A DNA stretch of 63,465 bases, counting the filler, from Octopus bimaculoides (taxonomy: Eukaryota), in assembly GCF_001194135.2 (NCBI RefSeq). It is 5 parts of 5 records of this genome, joined end to end, with 100 filler letters (N's around TTAATTAATTAA, not from the genome) between each part and the next. Parts side by side here need not be neighbours in the genome. Positions count along the whole stretch, not along the records: positions 41,065 to 56,900 come from NC_069000.1; 4 more parts are not named here. One strand, 5' to 3'. The translations under genes were made by a program, and so were the position numbers. Positions 40,856 to 51,133 of the stretch are shown here, piece after piece. Under the pieces are notes generated by a model. It had not been told where the DNA came from and searched no databases. It worked only from the letters and a program-made list of their open reading frames with translations. The number at the start of each line of letters is the position of its first letter. Position 1 is the stretch's first letter.

Positions 40856-41220
40856 ATTCTACATAAAATATTAATTTATTTACGGCATTGATCTCTTTTT
40901 CTCATTCTTTTTAGATATACACACGCTAATACACGACCCATGTTATATTCTCCATTCATGTTGCNNNNNNNNNNNNNNNNNNNNNNNNNNNNNNNNNNNN
41001 NNNNNNNNTTAATTAATTAANNNNNNNNNNNNNNNNNNNNNNNNNNNNNNNNNNNNNNNNNNNNTTTCTGATGTTATATTTATTCCTGACGATGTGTAAA
41101 GAAATTTTAATTTATTAAGTCTCTTAATGAATTCTTTATACTGAAAAATATATATTGAAGAAGATAAATATGTTCTTTTGAATATATACGTTTTTGTGTC
41201 GTAACTCCTTTATTATTATT

Positions 41221-41264
<44 letters not shown>

Positions 41265-43754
41265 CGTGCATATATACACGCACATATATGTGTGTTTGTG
41301 TATGCATGCATGTGTGGGCATGTTTGTGTTGTGCCTTCTCATCAACACTTGACAACTAGTGTTGGTTTGGTTACATCCCTACAACTTAGTATTGCAGAAA
41401 AAAAAGGCGGTCAATAGAATGAGCACCAATTTGAAAAAAAAAAAACAAAAACAAAAAAAAATAATGATATTTCGATTGGTTTTGATTGCTTAAAAAAGCA
41501 AAAAAAAAAAAAAAATTTAAAAATGGTATCTCAGTATGGTATGGCTGCAATCCAATGGCCAAAATAACAAAAACAGCTAAAAGAATAAATGAATGAAGGA
41601 AACTCATCTATATTTAATGTCCACTAAACTTCTCATTTCCTTTCCAGCAGAAAAAAAAAAAAGTCATAATAATATTCACCTTCTCTTCAAGTTGGTACAA
41701 AGTTCAATAAGGTTACATTGAGCCATTCGATTGACACTGGCCAAGTGATTCAGAATAGATCAGCTCACATGTCAGTTTGTCTCAAAGAGATATTTGCCTC
41801 GGTTTGTATATATCTATTTGATATTCATAGATAAATATACAGAAACATCTGCCCTTATCTCTTAGTATATGTGTCTGTCTGCCTGACCGTTTGCATGTAT
41901 GGCCGTCTGTCCGTCTGTCTATCTCTCTTTCCCTTTCTCATTTTGTTTCTATCCAGCTATCAACCTCTGTATTTTTCTTCTCTGTCTGTCTGTCTGTCTG
42001 TCTCTCTTTCTCTCTCTCTTGCTTGCCCTTTCTTTCTCAACTTATTCATGTTTTTTTCCTTTCTTTCTCACTTTTTATACACAGCAACAGACACTCACTC
42101 ACACACACACAAACACACACACACTCTCTCACACACACACTCTCACAGACACAAAACACACACAGAGCATGGGAAATAACCATCTGCTGCATGGTATATT
42201 TTGATTTCATGTACTATCATATAACACACACACACACACACACACACACANNNNNNNNNNNNNNNNNNNNNNNNNNNNNNNNNNNNNNNNNNNNNNNNNN
42301 NNNNNNNNNNNNNNNNNNNNNNNNNNNNNNNNNNNNNNNNNNNNNNNNNNNNNNNNNNNNNNNNNNNNNNNNNNNNNNNNNNNNNNNNNNNNNNNNNNNN
42401 NNNNNNNNNNNNNNNNNNNNNNNNNNNNNNNNNNNNNNNNNNNNNNNNNNNNNNNNNNNNNNNNNNNNNNNNNNNNNNNNNNNNNNNNNNNNNNNNNNNN
42501 NNNNNNNNNNNNNNNNNNNNNNNNNNNNNNNNNNNNNNNNNNNNNNNNNNNNNNNNNNNNNNNNNNNNNNNNNNNNNNNNNNNNNNNNNNNNNNNNNNNN
42601 NNNNNNNNNNNNNNNNNNNNNNNNNNNNNNNNNNNNNNNNNNNNNNNNNNNNNNNNNNNNNNNNNNNNNNNNNNNNNNNNNNNNNNNNNNNNNNNNNNNN
42701 NNNNNNNNNNNNNNNNNNNNNNNNNNNNNNNNNNNNNNNNNNNNNNNNNNNNNNNNNNNNNNNNNNNNNNNNNNNNNNNNNNNNNNNNNNNNNNNNNNNN
42801 NNNNNNNNNNNNNNNNNNNNNNNNNNNNNNNNNNNNNNACACATGTGTGCATGGATGTATTCATACATACATATATTTACATGTACACACATTCATACAT
42901 ACACATATGCATACATACATACATGCATGTATGCATATATTCATACACAGATATATTTATACATACATACATACATACATGCATGCATGATATATATGCA
43001 TTCATATATTCATATACACAGATTTTCATATGCAGATATATACATGCAGACAAACAGACATAAACACTTACATACATACGTACATACATACATACACACA
43101 CATACATACATACATACATACATGTATGCATGCATATATTCATACATATACACATAAATAATATACATCCTTATATACATAAATGCATATGCATACATAA
43201 TACACATGCATACATACATGCATATACACAGATATATTTATACATACATACATGCATACATAATATACATGCATACATACATACATGTTTGACCCATTTT
43301 ATGTTACAGTTTGAAAAGGTAAAAGAAAAAAAAATCAATGTAAAATATAGAAGATGCATTGATAGAGTAGCTGATGGTTATAGGTTGTCTTTTAATTACA
43401 AACCTATTTGGAAATAACCCAAGACTAATAAAGTTAGTTATGCAAAACTGATTTACCATTACTGTGGCAGTATTTCAGCTTGATTCAAACCACAACGGTT
43501 CAAACTGACTGAAGAACTAAGTAATTTGAATATAGAATATTGTTTGTCAGTGAAACGTTCTTCAATACATATATTGATTTCTTACTATTATGTTGTGGGG
43601 AGCAGTAGAACTTATTTGCTAGTAGAGAGACCTCTGAAGGTTTTTATGTTTGCGCTGTGTGTCTGGAGCAAGTCACATTGACGAAGTCCAGCCCTCTCTC
43701 TGCCGTGCTCTCTCAGGGAGAACTGAACTTAGTACTATGTTGTAATATTCTTTT

Positions 43755-43961
43755 CTGCTCTAGGCATAAGGCCTGAAATTTTTTGTTGGGAGGTGGGGGT
43801 GGGGGCAGTTGATTAGATCGACCCCAATACGCAACCGGTTCAGCCTCAGCAATACGCAACCGGTTCAGCCTCAGCAGAATTTGCTCAGAACTTAGTGATG
43901 AACAAAATGCTACTAAACATTTTACTTGACATACTAATGCTTCTTCTAGCTTGCCGCCTTA

Positions 43962-44011
<50 letters not shown>

Positions 44012-44250
44012 TAATAGTAATGATAATAATAATTCTTTCTACTGGAGGCACAAGGGCCTGAAATTTGTGGGGAGGGGACAAGTAGGTTACATCGACACCA
44101 GTGTTTCACTGGTACTTAATTTATCGACCTCTCAAGAGGACGAAAGACAAAGTTGACCTCGGTGAAATTTGCTCAGAACTTAGTGACAAACAAAATGCCG
44201 CTAAAAGTTTTTCTTGGCATGCTAACGATTCTTCTAGCTTGCCACCATAA
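43755..44250 (-). mobile_element. Two tandem family B SINEs separated by (AAT)n
   Basis: Copies at ~43755-43965 and ~44040-44250, with a 25-bp tandem duplication at ~43827-43876. Confidence 0.75.
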
Positions 44251-44727
44251 ATAATAACAATAATAATAGTAAATAATAAGCGCCTGGTTGACCCTTATCA
44301 GACGGGTAGTCATGATGGGTATAATGGGCTTCGTATAATTGTACCCCAGTGTTACTTTGATGGCATGCGCTGCTCTCTCACTCGATAATAATAACGATGA
44401 TGATGATGATGATGGTTGGTTCTCTCGATCAGATATATGTCAAATATGTGTAAATTAGGGTTTAAAATAATTATTTCTTTCATTTTATCCCAAGGGAGAA
44501 GTCATCTGTCTATTCAGTATGTCATAACAGCACTTGAAATAGCTGACTAACCCATAATTCATCTTTTGGTTACATTTCAATTATTAGACACAACACATAG
44601 AATTGGCTGTTGTGAAGTATAGCCATTAGACAGTGGCCATGCTGGGGCAACGCCTACTTACTTTTATTGGGAAATGTCTTTTTTTCATTAGTCCTAAAAC
44701 CAAATTTAATATATAAAAATGATTGAA

Positions 44728-44934
44728 TTAACACTTTAGCATATAAAATAGCCATATCTGTCCCAAAAGTTCAAACCAGCCAGATTTAATCTCTCACAGC
44801 TATCCTATTATGTCATTGCAAAAATAAACAATCACATCATTGAAATCTCGAAGCTCTGAGATAATGGATGATTATTTTATAATTATGTGAATACATAATC
44901 ATTTGACAGAATAATTTTAGCGCTAAAAGGTTAA
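44728..44934. mobile_element. Short TTAA-flanked MITE (piggyBac-like ends)
   Basis: ttaa-cactttagca ... cgctaaaagg-ttaa; internally similar to 55795-56338. Confidence 0.6.
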
Positions 44935-45453
44935 ACCTATACACAAGCATCTCTTATTGGTCCCTGAGAGAGGAAGGTTAAAGCCATCCCTGACTGGATT
45001 TGGATCTGGAATCAAAAGACATTAAGCCAGTCGCAATAAAAGCATTTGCTCTGTTCTACTGTCTCTGCCTTTTGCTAGTACAGTTTTGATAGTTGTCTGC
45101 CCTTTAGAGTCCCCACTGAAAATGTTACAAACTTACCTCCCTTGATCTTTCAACATCACTTGATCCGAGTTGATACCAGGAACGTTTGTTTGATAGTTTC
45201 TGTCAAACAAATTGTCCTACGACCTCTTAACTTTTGAATTTCTCTGGAATTAAACTTCCTTTACTTAAGAAAAAAAGGTTTAACGACAGGCAGGACACTC
45301 AGCTGTAAGAATCCTGCTTCAGTTACCTCACCCGTTTACCCCATGCTAGCTGGGAAAAAAGACGTTAAGCCTCTCTCTCTCTCTCCCCTCTTCTCTCTCT
45401 CTCTCTCTCCACACACACACACACACACACGCACACACACATACACACACACA

Positions 45454-45707
45454 TAGGGTGGTGCAGAAGTAGGTATACAGTTATGAAAAAAAAACATGTA
45501 CAATACTTATTTATTTTCATCAAAAAAATTAAAAGTTATGATAAAAGTATTATTATGATTAATGACAATGAAAATATCAAAAACGAGGCTAACTAATGTA
45601 GTTAGTTGTAATGTAATTAATGTAATGTGCTAATAATTTTAATGAATTAAATATTGTAAGATTGATGTGATATTTACTGTATACCTGCTTTTGCACCTCC
45701 CCCTGTA
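45454..45707. mobile_element. Tc1/mariner-type MITE
   Basis: TIRs agggtggtgcagaagtaggtatacagt and actgtatacctgcttttgcacctcccctg, TA-flanked. Confidence 0.75.
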
Positions 45708-47454
45708 TATGTATGTATGCACACACACACACATATATATGTATATATATATATATGTATACATATATATATTATGAACAGACTGACAGATAGATATTTA
45801 ATGCCAGTTTTCCCGCCACCACCAGAGTCCATTCTGTTGCAAACATTTAGGGCCATGACTTTAGTTTCAAGATACCTTCCTCTCCCCCAACACTTTTTTG
45901 GGAGACCTTGTAAAGGGTCACCCACATTGCTTTCCCTCCTTGCTAAAAGATTAAAAGGAAACCCTTTAAAAAAAAATTTTTTTTACTAATAACTATTATA
46001 TAATACATTGTTCTGGTAACATTGAAAAGTTGATATATCTAACTGATAAAACCTTTCTCTTTGCAAACCAATGAAGGAGCTTCTATGTGGTTACATGACC
46101 TGTCAGTAACCTCTGTATGACCTCTGTGTCAAAGGTGTCAAAGGACGATGGCCAGTCCAACTCAACAACAACAACAATAGCAAGATATTGTAGACCTAAT
46201 TTGAAGTTGGAAGTAAGGTGGTGGTGGTAGTGATGGCCATGGTAAAAATGCATGGTGTATGAAGTGCTTTGGTAATAAAGAATAAAAATGAAAATGAAAA
46301 TAGAAAATAAAATAAAACTTCTTTAAAAAATCCAAGATTTTAAGATTTTACTGCCATATTATGGTCACAGTGCGAAAATAAAATATCAGAATTTAACAAG
46401 TTTAATAAAAATTTAGAAATGCTAAATAAATAAGAATAAATAAATAAATACAAAATAAAAAAAATCTTAACAAACATAAATCTTTAGAAACATAAATTTA
46501 ANNNNNNNNNNNNNNNNNNNNNNNNNNNNNNNNNNNNNNNNNNNNNNNNNNNNNNNNNNNNNNNNNNNNNNNNNNNNNNNNNNNNNNNNNNNNNNNNNNN
46601 NNNNNNNNNNNNNNNNNNNNNNNNNNNNNNNNNNNNNNNNNNNNNNNNNNNNNNNNNNNNNNNNNNNNNNNNNNNNNNNNNNNNNNNNNNNNNNNNNNNN
46701 NNNNNNNNNNNNNNNNNNNNNNNNNNNNNNNNNNNNNNNNNNNNNNNNNNNNNNNNNNNNNNNNNNNNNNNNNNNNNNNNNNNNNNNNNNNNNNNNNNNN
46801 NNNNNNNNNNNNNNNNNNNNNNNNNNNNNNNNNNNNNNNNNNNNNNNNNNNNNNNNNNNNNNNNNNNNNNNNNNNNNNNNNNNNNNNNNNNNNNNNNNNN
46901 NNNNNNNNNNNNNNNNNNNNNNNNNNNNNNNNNNNNNNNNNNNNNNNNNNNNNNNNNNNNNNNNNNNNNNNNNNNNNNNNNNNNNNNNNNNNNNNNNNNN
47001 NNNNNNNNNNNNNNNNNNNNNNNNNNNNNNNNNNNNNNNNNNNNNNNNNNNNCCATTCGATGTTTAATAACTAGTTTTATAGAAACTTCTTACAAAATTC
47101 ATATTTTGTTTTTCACACATTAACTTGTGTTGTTTAAACTCTGTAAAAATATTAGAGAAAGAAACCCAGCTGTTTCTTGCAATACATAAATCTAAAGCAA
47201 AATTTTTTTCAGGGGCCCTTAAAATACTTTTGTGGACCCCTAATTATTATTTTGTTGTGTGGACCCCACCATATGGACTCTCACAGGCCATATGGACCCT
47301 CACGGGTCATTTGGACCCCAGTTGAAAGTCCATGTGTCTTTTATGCCATCAAATGCTGTAAATTAAAAAAAAAAAAAATGATAAATATATAAAATAGTTA
47401 TTCTTTCAAAATGGTGGCATTACAAATGTTCGGTTTTCAAACATTCATGAAACA

Positions 47455-48009
47455 TCATGAAATAACAGAGTCATATGTGAGTTTTCCACAAGCTTTCTTT
47501 CGAATTGGTTCTTTGCTGGAAAACAAATTATGTTTCCTTTTCCTAGACTTTCGTTCTCTTTTCAGCTTGCTGCCACACAGAGGCCTTAACTTCCGAGAAC
47601 GTTTTGGAGTCTTGTATGTCTCTTGAACTAATTCGGAATACTCAGACAGTTCATCACCCGCTGTATAGCTTTGTTTCGTTTGGTTGTTAATGTCATGCGA
47701 TGGTGTATGATCTAACTTTTGTACTTCATCTTCCGTTTGGTCTGTTTTAGACCTGGTCTCTTCTGTGTTGCTGACGACTTCGTCTAAGGGACAACCGTTA
47801 AGTTTCGAATCAGTTGGTTTCATCACAGATATTTGGTCATTCTCCTCGTCCGACTCTCTGTCCTTCTGGTTGTGGTTTCCACTTGGCTCACATTGCATCG
47901 AAGGGTCAACATAATCCCCCTTGAGCCAAATGTGCCGAGAACCAGTGATGTAGTGACGGAAACAACGTAACACACGGTTCCCTAGTGAATTATATTCCTC
48001 TGAAATAAC
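47455..48009 (-). CDS. Terminal coding exon of a retropepsin-like aspartic protease gene
   Basis: Acceptor ttttttcctag|GTT at 48009 (phase 0, matching the upstream exon). 185 open codons including the stop: VISEEYNSLGNRVLRCFRHYITGSRHIWLKGD..., an acidic tail and a basic cluster; TGA at 47457-47455. Confidence 0.85.
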   Translation of the reverse strand, partial: VISEEYNSLGNRVLRCFRHYITGSRHIWLKGDYVDPSMQCEPSGNHNQKDRESDEENDQISVMKPTDSKLNGCPLDEVVSNTEETRSKTDQTEDEVQKLDHTPSHDINNQTKQSYTAGDELSEYSELVQETYKTPKRSRKLRPLCGSKLKRERKSRKRKHNLFSSKEPIRKKACGKLTYDSVIS

Positions 48010-48299
48010 CTAGGAAAAAATTTAAAAAATGGATACAATGTATACATCAATGTGAATATTATGCACACACTTATAAACACCCAATATATTTTGAAGAAAA
48101 GAAATAGAAATATTACAAGAGATCATCAGTGGTATCTACCAAGTGAATGAAATTTCTCAGAAATTAGCTAACAAGAAATGTAAGGACCCTGTGAAGAAGA
48201 TGCCTGACGTATTTCCCCTACCTCCACCCCATTTCCTTCCCAATAATAGGAGGAAGGGGAAAAACGATTGATGGCTATATAAGTCAACATGAAGAGCGT

Positions 48300-48532
48300 C
48301 GCCTTCCTGGCACTTGTTCCGGTGGCACGTTAGAAAATTATTCGAACAAGGTTGTTGACAGTGCCGCTGGGCTGGCTCCTGTGCAGGTGGCACGTAAAAA
48401 ATAACACCATGTTGAGCGTGGCCGTTGCCAGTACCGCGTGACTGGCCCTCGTGCTGGTGGCATGTAAAAGCACCCACTACACTCTCGGAGCAGTTGTTGG
48501 CATTAGGAAGGGCATCCAGCTGTAGAAACTCT
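48300..48532 (+). mobile_element. Family E repeat in intron
   Basis: ggtggcatgtaaaagcacccactacactctcggag...ggcattaggaagggcatccagctgtagaaac. Confidence 0.7.
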
Positions 48533-49475
48533 NNNNNNNNNNNNNNNNNNNNNNNNNNNNNNNNNNNNNNNNNNNNNNNNNNNNNNNNNNNNNNNNNNNN
48601 NNNNNNNNNNNNNNNNNNNNNNNNNNNNNNNNNNNNNNNNNNNNNNNNNNNNNNNNNNNNNNNNNNNNNNNNNNNNNNNNNNNNNNNNNNNNNNNNNNNN
48701 NNNNNNNNNNNNNNNNNNNNNNNNNNNNNNNNNNNNNNNNNNNNNNNNNCAAATTCTGCTGAGGTCGACTTTGTCTTTCGTCCCTTTCGGGGTTGAGAAA
48801 GCAAGTACCATTTGAGCACTGGGGGTCAATGTAATCGACTTACCCACCCCATCCCCATCCCCATCCCCACCCCCGGGGGCTCGAAATTGCTGGCATAATG
48901 CCAAAATGTGAAATCAATATTATATATACACTTAAACACACACAACGTATAGTTTGCCTGTTTCTTTCAGTCTGGTGCTAGATAGACAACAAAATGGAAT
49001 GGTCATGGCTGGAATGTCTTGATCATAGGTCAGCTGAATCGGGGCTGACCTAGGGGCTACACATACAACAACAGTAACAATGACATGACCCCCACCATCC
49101 ACTGCGCCAAAACCTAGAAAAGAGCGCAATATTGCAAGTTACCTCCCTTGACTCTGATCACTGCAGACGCTTTATTGACCAAAAATAATTCATTGTTTTT
49201 TTATTCATATATTCACATATGGAAATATATTATTGAATACGTTTCCGCATCACGTTTATCATATCATATTATTTTTAATAGATAATAAATTGCGAGATAT
49301 TTCATTATGTATACATGAATTGATTAACGTTAACTGTAAATACATTATTTAATATAAATAATCAGGAATAGAGGCAGCATATTAATTTAGTTAAACATGT
49401 GTTTAGTAAATGACCGATATGAGATGCAACTGTCATGTATTGGAATACACAGTTAAGGAAAGGAAGGAAGGTAGT

Positions 49476-49848
49476 ACTCCGTCGCTTACGACGTCGAGGG
49501 TTCCAGTTGACCCGATCAACGGAACAGCCTGCTCATGAAATTAACGTGCAAGTGGCTGAGCACTCCACAGACACGTGTACCCTTATTGTAGTTCTCGGGG
49601 ATATTCAGCGTGTCACAGTGTGACAAGGCTGACCCTTTGAATTACAGGCACAACAGAAACAGGAAGTAAGAGTGAGAGAAAGTTGTGGTGGAAGAGTACA
49701 GAAGGGTTCTCCACCATCCCCTGCCGGAGCCCCGTGGAGCTTTTTGGTGTTTTCGCTCAATAAACACTCACAACGCCCGGTCTGGGAATCGAAACCGCGA
49801 TCCTATGACCGCGAGTACGCTGCCCTAACCACTGGGCCATTGCGCCTC
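49476..49848 (-). mobile_element. Family A SINE in intron
   Basis: High identity to 452-830. Confidence 0.85.
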
Positions 49849-49964
49849 GGAATACACAATATATCATAGAAAAGAAACAGTTAGATCGGTTTTTTTCCCC
49901 CCATGATTTTTGTTTTTCAGCTCAATGCATTCAAATTACCATAGCATAATATGCTGAGGCATAA

Positions 49965-50230
49965 GACGGTGAGCTGGCAGAAACGTTAGCACGCCGGGCG
50001 AAATGCTTAGCGGTATTTCGTCTGCCGTTACGTTCTGTGTTCAAATTCCGCCGAGGTCGACTTTGCCTTTCATCCTTTCGGGGTCGATAAATTAAGTACC
50101 AGTTACGCACTGGGGTCGATGTAATCGACTTAATCCGTTCGTCTGTTCTTGTTTGTTCCCTCTATGTCTAGCCCCTTGTGGGCAATAACGAAATAGGTAT
50201 TTCATCTACCGTTACTACGTTCTGAGTTCA
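49965..50230 (+). mobile_element. Full-length family B SINE in intron
   Basis: Head ggtgagctggcagaaacgttagc through tail ccccttgtgggcaataac. Confidence 0.9.
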
Positions 50231-50399
50231 AAGGGAGAACAAATGCAGGGAGCGATTTCTTTGACTAAAAAAGGTGGTGCTCCAGCATGGTCGCAGTTAA
50301 GTGACTGAAACTAGTAAAAGAATAAAAGAAGATCTAAAATGATATCTTATTTGACGTTTTGCTCATTTGTAACAAAAAAAAAAGCCTGGAATTTCTTAC

Positions 50400-50569
50400 C
50401 TCAATTTTAAGTTCAACTGATCCAAGCTTAAGCTTGGCTTCATATAGGGTTTTGTGCATTGACGCATGAACTCCTTTGCTGCGAACGTTTCCCAGTTCTT
50501 TCAAGTCAAGCTTTTCAACAATGTCTTTCCTCAAAGTCACCACATCGCTGCCAGAATCAACCATAAATT
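50400..50569 (-). CDS. Internal exon encoding the catalytic D-S-G motif of a retropepsin-like aspartic protease
   Basis: Acceptor ttttcttccctag|AA, donor GAG|gtaaga, 170 nt. (E)FMVDSGSDVVTLRKDIVEKLDLKELGNVRSKGVHASMHKTLYEAKLKLGSVELKIE. Confidence 0.9.
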
Positions 50570-51133
50570 CTAGGGAAGAAAAATTCATAAAAAAAGACAT
50601 TATATTCTTTTCTACTCNNNNNNNNNNNNNNNNNNNNNNNNNNNNNNNNNNNNNNNNNNNNNNNNNNNNNNNNNNNNNNNNNNNNNNNNNNNNNNNNNNN
50701 NNNNNNNNNNNNNNNNNNNNNNNNNNNNNNNNNNNNNNNNNNNNNNNNNNNNNNNNNNNNNNNNNNNNNNNNNNNNNNNNNNNNNNNNNNNNNNNNNNNN
50801 NNNNNNNNNNNNNNNNNNNNNNNNNNNNNNNNNNNNNNNNNNNNNNNNNNNNNNNNNNNNNNNNNNNNNNNNNNNNNNNNNNNNNNNNNNNNNNNNNNNN
50901 NNNNNNNNNNNNNNNNNNNNNNNNNNNNNNNNNNNNNNNNNNNNNNNNNNNNNNNNNNNNNNNNNNNNNNNNNNNNNNNNNNNNNNNNNCTTCGTAAATT
51001 TGTGTAGGGAAATTGTGAATTAACTCCATGCCTTACAAATAACAATGTAACTTTTCTCGAAATATAACAATTTAAACTAGAACTATTAATATTTCTAAGT
51101 CTCTCTAAAGGAGATTACGGCAGCGGTACTGGA

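Follow-up and report, generated by a model that had tools for sequence, protein, structure and literature searches.

The DNA analysed here is a window of 63,465 nucleotides from Octopus bimaculoides (assembly GCF_001194135.2), assembled from five parts, and the gene in question lies on the minus strand of the part spanning positions 41,065 to 56,900 (record NC_069000.1; hereafter, the piece). It is likely, on the evidence, that the two exons found there conclude the coding sequence of an O. bimaculoides gene whose orthologues are conserved among animals and uncharacterised, and that its product combines two SAM domains, a basic linker and a retropepsin domain that is predicted to be a protease, followed in molluscs by a disordered tail with a cluster resembling a nuclear localization signal (NLS). 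The gene is a cellular cousin of DDI1 and not a member of the DDI1 family; it is neither a transposon remnant nor a stand-alone protease. An initial annotation, made from the DNA alone, had proposed a spliced host gene for a retropepsin-type aspartic protease unlike DDI1. Minus-strand translation reproduced its two exons exactly, including coordinates, canonical splice sites, phase and peptide. Its interpretation stood in part: the spliced retropepsin gene was supported, but the piece codes for no more than the C-terminal two-thirds of the protease domain, and the exons for its initial ~45 residues and for the SAM domains lie upstream of the piece.

The penultimate coding exon (exon D) follows a polypyrimidine tract and the acceptor ttcttccctAG/AATTTATGG (in short, ttcttccctAG/AATTT; slashes mark exon boundaries). 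It starts in phase 1, the G of its Glu codon being supplied by the upstream exon, and its donor reads GAG/GTAAGA. Joining of exon D to the last coding exon (exon E) in phase 0 gave …EFMVDSGSDVVTLRKDIVEKLDLKELGNVRSKGVHASMHKTLYEAKLKLGSVELKIE/VISEEYNSLGNRVLRCFRHYITGSRHIWLKGDY…, followed by 151 more residues. The F-M-V-D-S-G-S loop is encoded at 50567-50547 and the S-L-G codons lie at 47988-47980, both on the minus strand. In a tblastn search with the O. vulgaris and O. sinensis orthologues, exons D and E were matched at E values of 3e-29 and 6e-95, and the orthologue protein was contiguous across their junction at residue 207; this search of the piece recovered exons D and E only and no upstream exons for the SAM domains or the first protease strands. 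Exon D was also matched in the loci of O. vulgaris (L001, 37113-37283) and of the hemichordate Ptychodera (L003, 7954-8133). Moreover, a cephalopod homologue is represented in Logan contig SRR21372858 (1559 nt) by a continuous 434-aa open reading frame (ORF), in which the same junction is crossed without a break. Since this 434-aa ORF sits on only 1559 nt, the contig is taken to be mRNA derived, and it provides transcript-level support, from a relative, for the exon D/E junction. The exon D/E structure is thus not due to chance, and the observation of a spliced host gene was confirmed by the orthologues of both octopus species and by the cephalopod transcript contig.

The piece contains five internal runs of N, one of which (48533-48749) falls inside the intron between the two exons. 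Both of its flanks match the O. vulgaris intron in order and orientation, and no orthologue has additional residues at the exon D/E junction. Because the gap is intronic, with colinear flanks and orthologues that lack extra junction residues, it is irrelevant to the reading frame.

The translated exons are 100% identical to UniProt entry A0A0L8HQ18 (A0A0L8HQ18_OCTBM) of O. bimaculoides, which is annotated as "Uncharacterized protein"; an exact look-up of this entry in the contig collection returned no record. In a protein search, identity was 87% with the O. sinensis and O. vulgaris counterparts. Over the domain, identity amounted to 54-67% with other molluscs (the cephalopod transcript, bivalves and Haliotis), to 42% with the gastropod Pomacea and to 59% with Ptychodera. 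The missing ~45 N-terminal residues of the domain (…PVAYGRWMKP…KFDFLCIDATVFSTK…) belong to an upstream exon outside the piece. Upstream exons in O. vulgaris include one for a SAM domain (…LPGHKKRLERA) and one for VSQLKKKK…PVAYGRWMKPKCLVYAKFDFLCIDATVFSTKHPDRAEEL, the latter coding for these first ~45 residues. A0A0L8HQ18 joins …KKRLERA straight to EFMVDSG and omits the linker/first-strand exon that is present in O. vulgaris and O. sinensis; this skip is probably an assembly or annotation artefact and is of practical concern to users of the O. bimaculoides gene model. The O. vulgaris orthologue has the SAM exons, which likewise lie outside the piece, and the UniProt model has part of them. Colinearity with the O. 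vulgaris locus extends over the entire piece, and extrapolation from the last solid O. vulgaris anchor placed the next upstream exon at or just past the end of the piece at 56900. In view of this colinearity, the upstream exon lies outside the piece and not in one of its internal gaps. The O. sinensis XP model has a duplicated non-SAM segment at its N terminus and the O. vulgaris model a 27-residue leader, and both models are without the first SAM domain that a cephalopod transcript has. The octopus 5' exons are probably mis-modelled or located further upstream than the 10 kb examined.

An alignment of 16 homologues revealed a common layout consisting of SAM, SAM, a basic linker, a conserved domain of ~130 residues and a variable tail. 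Two N-terminal SAM domains were fused to the protease domain in every full-length orthologue, contrary to the "stand-alone" character that had been suggested initially, and the Pfam models SAM_1 / SAM_2 were significant in 13 members. By sequence similarity, the SAM tandem belongs to the Caskin/ANKS1/Eph class, its closest relatives being Caskin-2, SAMD5 and ANKS1B (E 7e-8 to 5e-7). The N-terminal region as a whole is most similar to tandem-SAM proteins such as Caskin-1/2, ANKS1A/B and SAMD5, which is why automatic annotation has produced 'ANKS1A-like' names; those proteins differ in that they lack a protease domain and contain modules of the ankyrin, PTB or SH3 type. Family members are annotated as uncharacterised, as "SAM domain-containing" or, in several genomes, under the misleading 'ANKS1A-like' label. 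For the conserved domain, consistent matches below threshold were obtained with Asp_protease_2 (PF13650) in 14 of the 16 members, with gag-asp_proteas (PF13975) in 12 and with Spuma_A9PTase in 8.

We then searched 1.84 billion representative proteins with a profile of the domain, which gave 177 matches at E ≤ 1e-3, 150 of them listed. Among the 150 listed, every inspected match was an animal family member or an exon fragment, with the exception of one repeat protein. Members were found in Porifera (Oscarella), Cnidaria (Nematostella, Actinia, Exaiptasia, Acropora and Desmophyllum), Nemertea (Tubulanus and Lineus), Brachiopoda (Lingula), Mollusca (chiton, gastropods, bivalves and cephalopods), Echinodermata (the crinoid Anneissia), Hemichordata (Ptychodera and Saccoglossus) and Cephalochordata (Branchiostoma). 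No vertebrate or genuine arthropod member was present among the matches whose source was looked up. The repeat protein, XP_068082098.1 of the insect Anabrus simplex (2694 aa), was rejected as a false positive: it lacks D-[ST]-G and reached E 4e-20 by summing 14 weak stretches (FLVDHGLD… repeats), and its inclusion would wrongly extend the family to arthropods. A second profile search returned 'proteins' of 70-200 aa that might have passed for a new family; these turned out to be fragments corresponding to exons of orthologues from corals and other invertebrates.

Across 17 sequences ranging from sponge to amphioxus, fifteen positions were invariant: G7, W9, F43, D46, S47, S49, L62, G91, E98, G108, F115, H117, I119, H124 and W126. 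At the active site, D, S and S do not vary and the third position is G or A; orthologues without the catalytic Asp, which would have spoken against the initial annotation, were not seen among these sequences. The family signature, M-x-D-S-G-S-D-V-x-T … S-x-G-V-H … Y-x-S-x-G … F-x-H-x-I-x4-H-x-W after a tandem SAM, is present, with a conserved Y-x-S-[LIV]-G motif whose Gly is G108. The O. bimaculoides copy retains all the invariant and signature residues that its two exons encode. The ratio of nonsynonymous to synonymous substitution (dN/dS) between O. bimaculoides and O. vulgaris, calculated by the Nei-Gojobori method, was 0.13 over those domain codons that the window contains and 0.30 over the tail; the protease domain is under purifying selection. 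The G-x-W near the N terminus and the C-terminal F-x-H-x-I-x4-H-x-W (47965-47930), which together include two His and two Trp residues that never vary, are specific to the family; we know of no counterpart of this signature in other retropepsins, and it may serve as the dimer interface or to bind a ligand or metal.

The fold was investigated by structure prediction. AlphaFold2 (AF2) modelling of the domain alignment yielded a predicted local distance difference test score (pLDDT) of 90.9 and a predicted template modelling score (pTM) of 0.82. The elements of the model are, in order, an N-terminal strand, strands leading into the DSG loop, a helix, a long hairpin, more strands, a short helix (residues 109-112) and a C-terminal hairpin of two strands, on which F-x-H-x-I-x4-H-x-W sits according to the AF2 secondary structure of the part coded by 47911..48009. 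The block of lowest confidence (residues 71-80) is at the hairpin tip, as expected for a flap. In a Foldseek comparison with the PDB, only retropepsins and pepsin lobes were recovered at probability 1.0. The top match was Rickettsia APRc (5c9b; E 3e-4, TM 0.56-0.59), and the others at this probability included the proteases of feline immunodeficiency virus (FIV), human T-lymphotropic virus 1 (HTLV-1), human immunodeficiency virus 1 (HIV-1), equine infectious anaemia virus (EIAV), Rous sarcoma virus (RSV) and foamy virus as well as Toxoplasma Ddi1, with E 4e-4 to 3e-3 and TM 0.5-0.57 for the retroviral proteases and Ddi1. The Foldseek viral library returned phage retropepsin-like proteins together with retroviral and caulimovirid proteases. 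At the sequence level, a profile search of the PDB reached the simian foamy virus protease 2jys (E 0.019) via the DSG, the flap and a Y-D-x-[IL] segment, and a single-sequence search of the PDB gave no matches. The assignment of the modelled domain to the retropepsin fold is firm, and no single relative stands out. The clan-AA domain of the initial annotation was hence borne out by both sequence and AF2/Foldseek, with its D-S-G, its flap hairpin and the S-L-G that follows. In the full-length O. vulgaris model, a SAM domain and the protease domain are both predicted with confidence; the tail, from residue 250 on, has a pLDDT of <50 nearly throughout and corresponds to 47910-47458 of the window.

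A one-lobe retropepsin of clan AA carries a single catalytic Asp and is active only as a symmetric homodimer. By the enzymology of this clan, the octopus domain would have to homodimerize symmetrically in order to pair two Asp residues. The exact catalytic loop is so conserved that an active enzyme would be expected. SAM modules of the Caskin/SAMD5/ANKS1B type self-associate or bind Eph-type SAM domains, and the tandem probably provides self-association or partner recruitment here as well. It would thereby control where and when the protease dimer forms and which substrate is cut, in a putative parallel to the ubiquitin-handling UBL/UBA domains that direct Ddi1. The K/R-rich tail of the mollusc proteins may point to a nuclear site of action; K/R clusters similar to the octopus basic cluster occur in the tails of other mollusc orthologues. 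N-terminal strand and C-terminal hairpin elements build the dimer sheet in retroviral-like proteases (PMC11402058), and the family-specific invariants, being on the N-terminal strand and the C-terminal hairpin, would be placed where this sheet forms.

Several points weigh against the reading as a conserved SAM-SAM-protease. Every Pfam clan-AA match lies below the gathering score: in the proteins tabulated, PF13650 reached 20-24 bits versus 24.3 and PF13975 18-22 bits versus 28.2. Some distant members have a degenerate motif, D-S-A in Actinia tenebrosa and D-T-L in a metagenomic fragment, and these may be inactive paralogues. The first-strand exon is found neither in the UniProt O. bimaculoides model nor in the piece, the copy of this species having been read only in part. 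The roles given to the SAM tandem and to the NLS-like tail come by analogy only, and protease activity in every family member is predicted from sequence and modelled structure. The sub-threshold hidden Markov model matches and the D-S-A and D-T-L motifs are also what favours the main alternative, a retropepsin fold that serves as a non-catalytic scaffold or peptide-binding module (a pseudo-protease), with the SAM domains doing the real work. This alternative deserves to be taken seriously, yet it appears unlikely when set against the invariance, from sponge to amphioxus, of the D and S of the motif, with a nearly invariant G, against the similar conservation of the flap Gly and the S-x-G, and against the low dN/dS of the domain.

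Structure provides the starting point for a second alternative, namely that the protease domain came from bacteria through horizontal transfer of a stand-alone retropepsin-like protease of the APRc / TIGR02281 type. APRc is a bacterial membrane-associated protein. It was the top structural match, and the best, sub-threshold Pfam models, PF13650 and PF13975, cover bacterial retropepsin-like enzymes too. However, the margin of APRc over the retroviral and Ddi1 matches is negligible (E 3e-4 versus 4e-4 to 3e-3; TM 0.56 versus 0.5-0.57), and the prokaryotic clan-AA models of NCBIfam do not match: TIGR03698 scored in 2 of the 12 members, at E 0.042, and TIGR02281 in none. No link to APRc or other bacterial proteases was obtained at the sequence level either, as no prokaryotic match was recognised among the 150 listed from the profile search. 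The octopus gene further differs from APRc in being a spliced animal gene with SAM domains. Bacterial transfer is therefore improbable, and the initial suggestion of a closer resemblance to prokaryotic retropepsin-like proteases was not supported. Had such a transfer taken place, it would predate animals, with no signal left that sequence comparison could detect.

The intron positions bear on the age of the gene. Ptychodera flava has exactly the three intron positions of the octopus gene (…A/VS…, …L/EFMVDSG and …IE/V…), and since these positions are identical, the split gene structure is at least as old as the bilaterian ancestor. Coral exon fragments end at the same …VE/V boundary. In Nematostella, a single exon (L002, 5565-5903) contains the domain core, beginning with the first barrel strand (RFGKFLCL…) and ending at the stop codon, which suggests that Nematostella lost these introns. 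The gene predates the cnidarian-bilaterian split, and because of this age and of the introns common to octopus and hemichordate, it is not a recent domestication.

These findings also bear on a third alternative, that the domain is a fragment of a long terminal repeat (LTR) retrotransposon or endogenous retrovirus protease, recently domesticated or decaying in octopus DNA. The repeat-rich surroundings would be in keeping with such an origin, as would the weak resemblance to foamy-virus protease and to the models gag-asp_proteas and Spuma_A9PTase. The fold, D-[ST]-G, flap and a G-R-N-like motif (S-L-G-N-R in octopus) are indeed shared with the retroviral and spumaretroviral proteases (MEROPS A2/A9). 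In contrast, no gag, reverse transcriptase (RT) or integrase (IN) sequence was found in the gene or the piece, and no RT/IN ORF either; neighbouring exons code for SAM; introns at positions common to the hemichordate split the domain; the locus is colinear between octopus species and under purifying selection; and SAM-SAM orthologues exist in eight phyla. The octopus protein also differs from retroviral proteases in standing outside a Gag-Pol polyprotein, with conserved introns, and the family has an extra N-terminal strand (G-x-W-x-K-P) and the C-terminal F-x-H-x-I-x4-H-x-W. A retroelement fragment is thus very improbable. The initial annotation had envisaged that the protease may be domesticated or anciently transferred; of these, recent domestication is contradicted by age and shared introns.

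Among known cellular proteases, the closest parallel is DDI1/DDI2, an ancient one-lobe retropepsin with D-S-G inside a multidomain protein of interaction modules. The fold is alike (Toxoplasma gondii Ddi1 7d66, TM 0.52-0.55), and the C-terminal hairpin of the octopus family is consistent with the dimer sheet that C-terminal strands form in retroviral-like proteases (PMC11402058). The differences are in architecture, the octopus family having two SAM domains in place of UBL, HDD and UBA, in the motif, DSGSD versus DSGAQ in DDI1, and in distribution: DDI1 is pan-eukaryotic and the SAM-SAM family was seen in animals only, with no vertebrate among the matches checked. The Pfam DDI1 model PF09668 matched insignificantly (E 0.073), on a 72-aa fragment only. 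The protein is accordingly unlike DDI1, as had been annotated.

Retroviral-like proteases with D-S-G also occur in the cellular proteins ASPRV1 (SASPase), PEG10 and RTL1. These derive from Metaviridae and carry Gag-like parts, ASPRV1 having been domesticated during vertebrate evolution (PMC11402058); the octopus family differs in reaching back to sponges and in having no Gag-like region. NRIP2 and NRIP3, vertebrate nuclear-receptor-interacting proteins with a retropepsin-like C-terminal domain, are set apart from the octopus family only by the fact that no looked-up source was a vertebrate. That the octopus gene is a divergent member of DDI1/DDI2, NRIP2/3 or ASPRV1 has next to nothing to recommend it beyond the fold and D-S-G motif common to DDI1 and ASPRV1, given the lack of any UBL, HDD, UBA or Gag-like domain, the insignificant PF09668 match, the absence of vertebrates among the looked-up match sources and the contrast between ASPRV1, retrotransposon derived in vertebrates with a Gag-like domain (PMC11402058), and an octopus gene with ancient introns and SAM.

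A literature search linking SAM domains with retropepsin or aspartic protease returned nothing relevant, and no literature on the family was found; nor did a review comparing cellular retropepsin families turn up. The family is in this sense uncharacterised, as had been proposed, its members being annotated as such. The SAM-SAM-protease architecture has not been reported previously, and the sequences are already in databases as uncharacterised proteins. NRIP2/3 are further cellular retropepsin-like proteases. One review names only Ddi1/2, PEG10, PEG11/RTL1 and ASPRV1 as cellular retroviral-like proteases, all but DDI1 being derived from retroelements (PMC11402058). Tentatively, and with rather less confidence than in the orthologue assignment itself, the SAM-SAM family may be, next to DDI1 and independently of it, a second lineage of cellular retropepsins that goes far back in animals; its dimerization, and with it its activity, would be SAM-gated, it would act in the nucleus in molluscs, and it would have arisen before the sponge-eumetazoan split and later been lost in vertebrates and ecdysozoans. 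If so, a further cellular retropepsin family would be a new case of a dimer-dependent protease wired to interaction modules, and a branch this old and this isolated in sequence may help to show in which direction cellular one-lobe enzymes and the proteases of retroelements are related by descent. The predicted protease would be a testable orphan enzyme for marine-invertebrate biology. The features of the gene within the window are collected in Table 1.

Table 1. Features of the SAM-SAM-retropepsin gene in the window (positions count along the whole stretch)
Feature	Position	Strand	Remarks
Penultimate coding exon (exon D)	50400..50569	-	Codes for (E)FMVDSGSDVVTLRKDIVEKLDLKELGNVRSKGVHASMHKTLYEAKLKLGSVELKIE: active-site loop and flap hairpin
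D-S-G catalytic motif (codons GAT TCT GGC)	50550..50558	-	Context F-M-V-D-S-G-S-D-V
Intron (GTAAGA…CCTAG)	48010..50399	-	Includes gap 48533-48749 and SINE-like repeats; colinear with O. vulgaris intron L001 37284-41021
Last coding exon (exon E)	47455..48009	-	Acceptor ttttttcctAG/GTTATT; ends with TGA
First 33 codons of exon E, VISEEYNSLGNRVLRCFRHYITGSRHIWLKGDY	47911..48009	-	S-L-G, short helix, two C-terminal strands
C-terminal tail, 151 codons	47458..47910	-	S/K/E/D-rich, predicted disordered
Basic cluster KTPKRSRKLRPLCGSKLKRERKSRKRKHNLFSSKEPIRKKACGK	47482..47613	-	Putative, nuclear localization signal-like
Stop codon TGA	47455..47457	-	

No other gene was found in the piece, and scans of it for tRNAs and with Rfam gave no matches. 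Interspersed repeats of ~150-235 nt that resemble short interspersed elements (SINEs) form two families, which recur several times in the piece and are numerous at the O. vulgaris locus. Copies were located at 49961-50195, 55000-55234 (inverted, 89%) and 44080-44250, and also at 48307-48532 and 55596-55753; one copy directly adjoins the N run that starts at 48533. The tRNA-like sequence near 49780-49850 was recognised by neither ARAGORN nor Rfam. Long microsatellite and low-complexity tracts extend over 52330-52950, 53150-53500, 53990-54680 and 42060-43270; they consist of (GAT/GAC/GAG)n, (TC)n/(TCC)n, (GA/GAA)n and (CA/TACA)n and give rise to long spurious ORFs on both strands.

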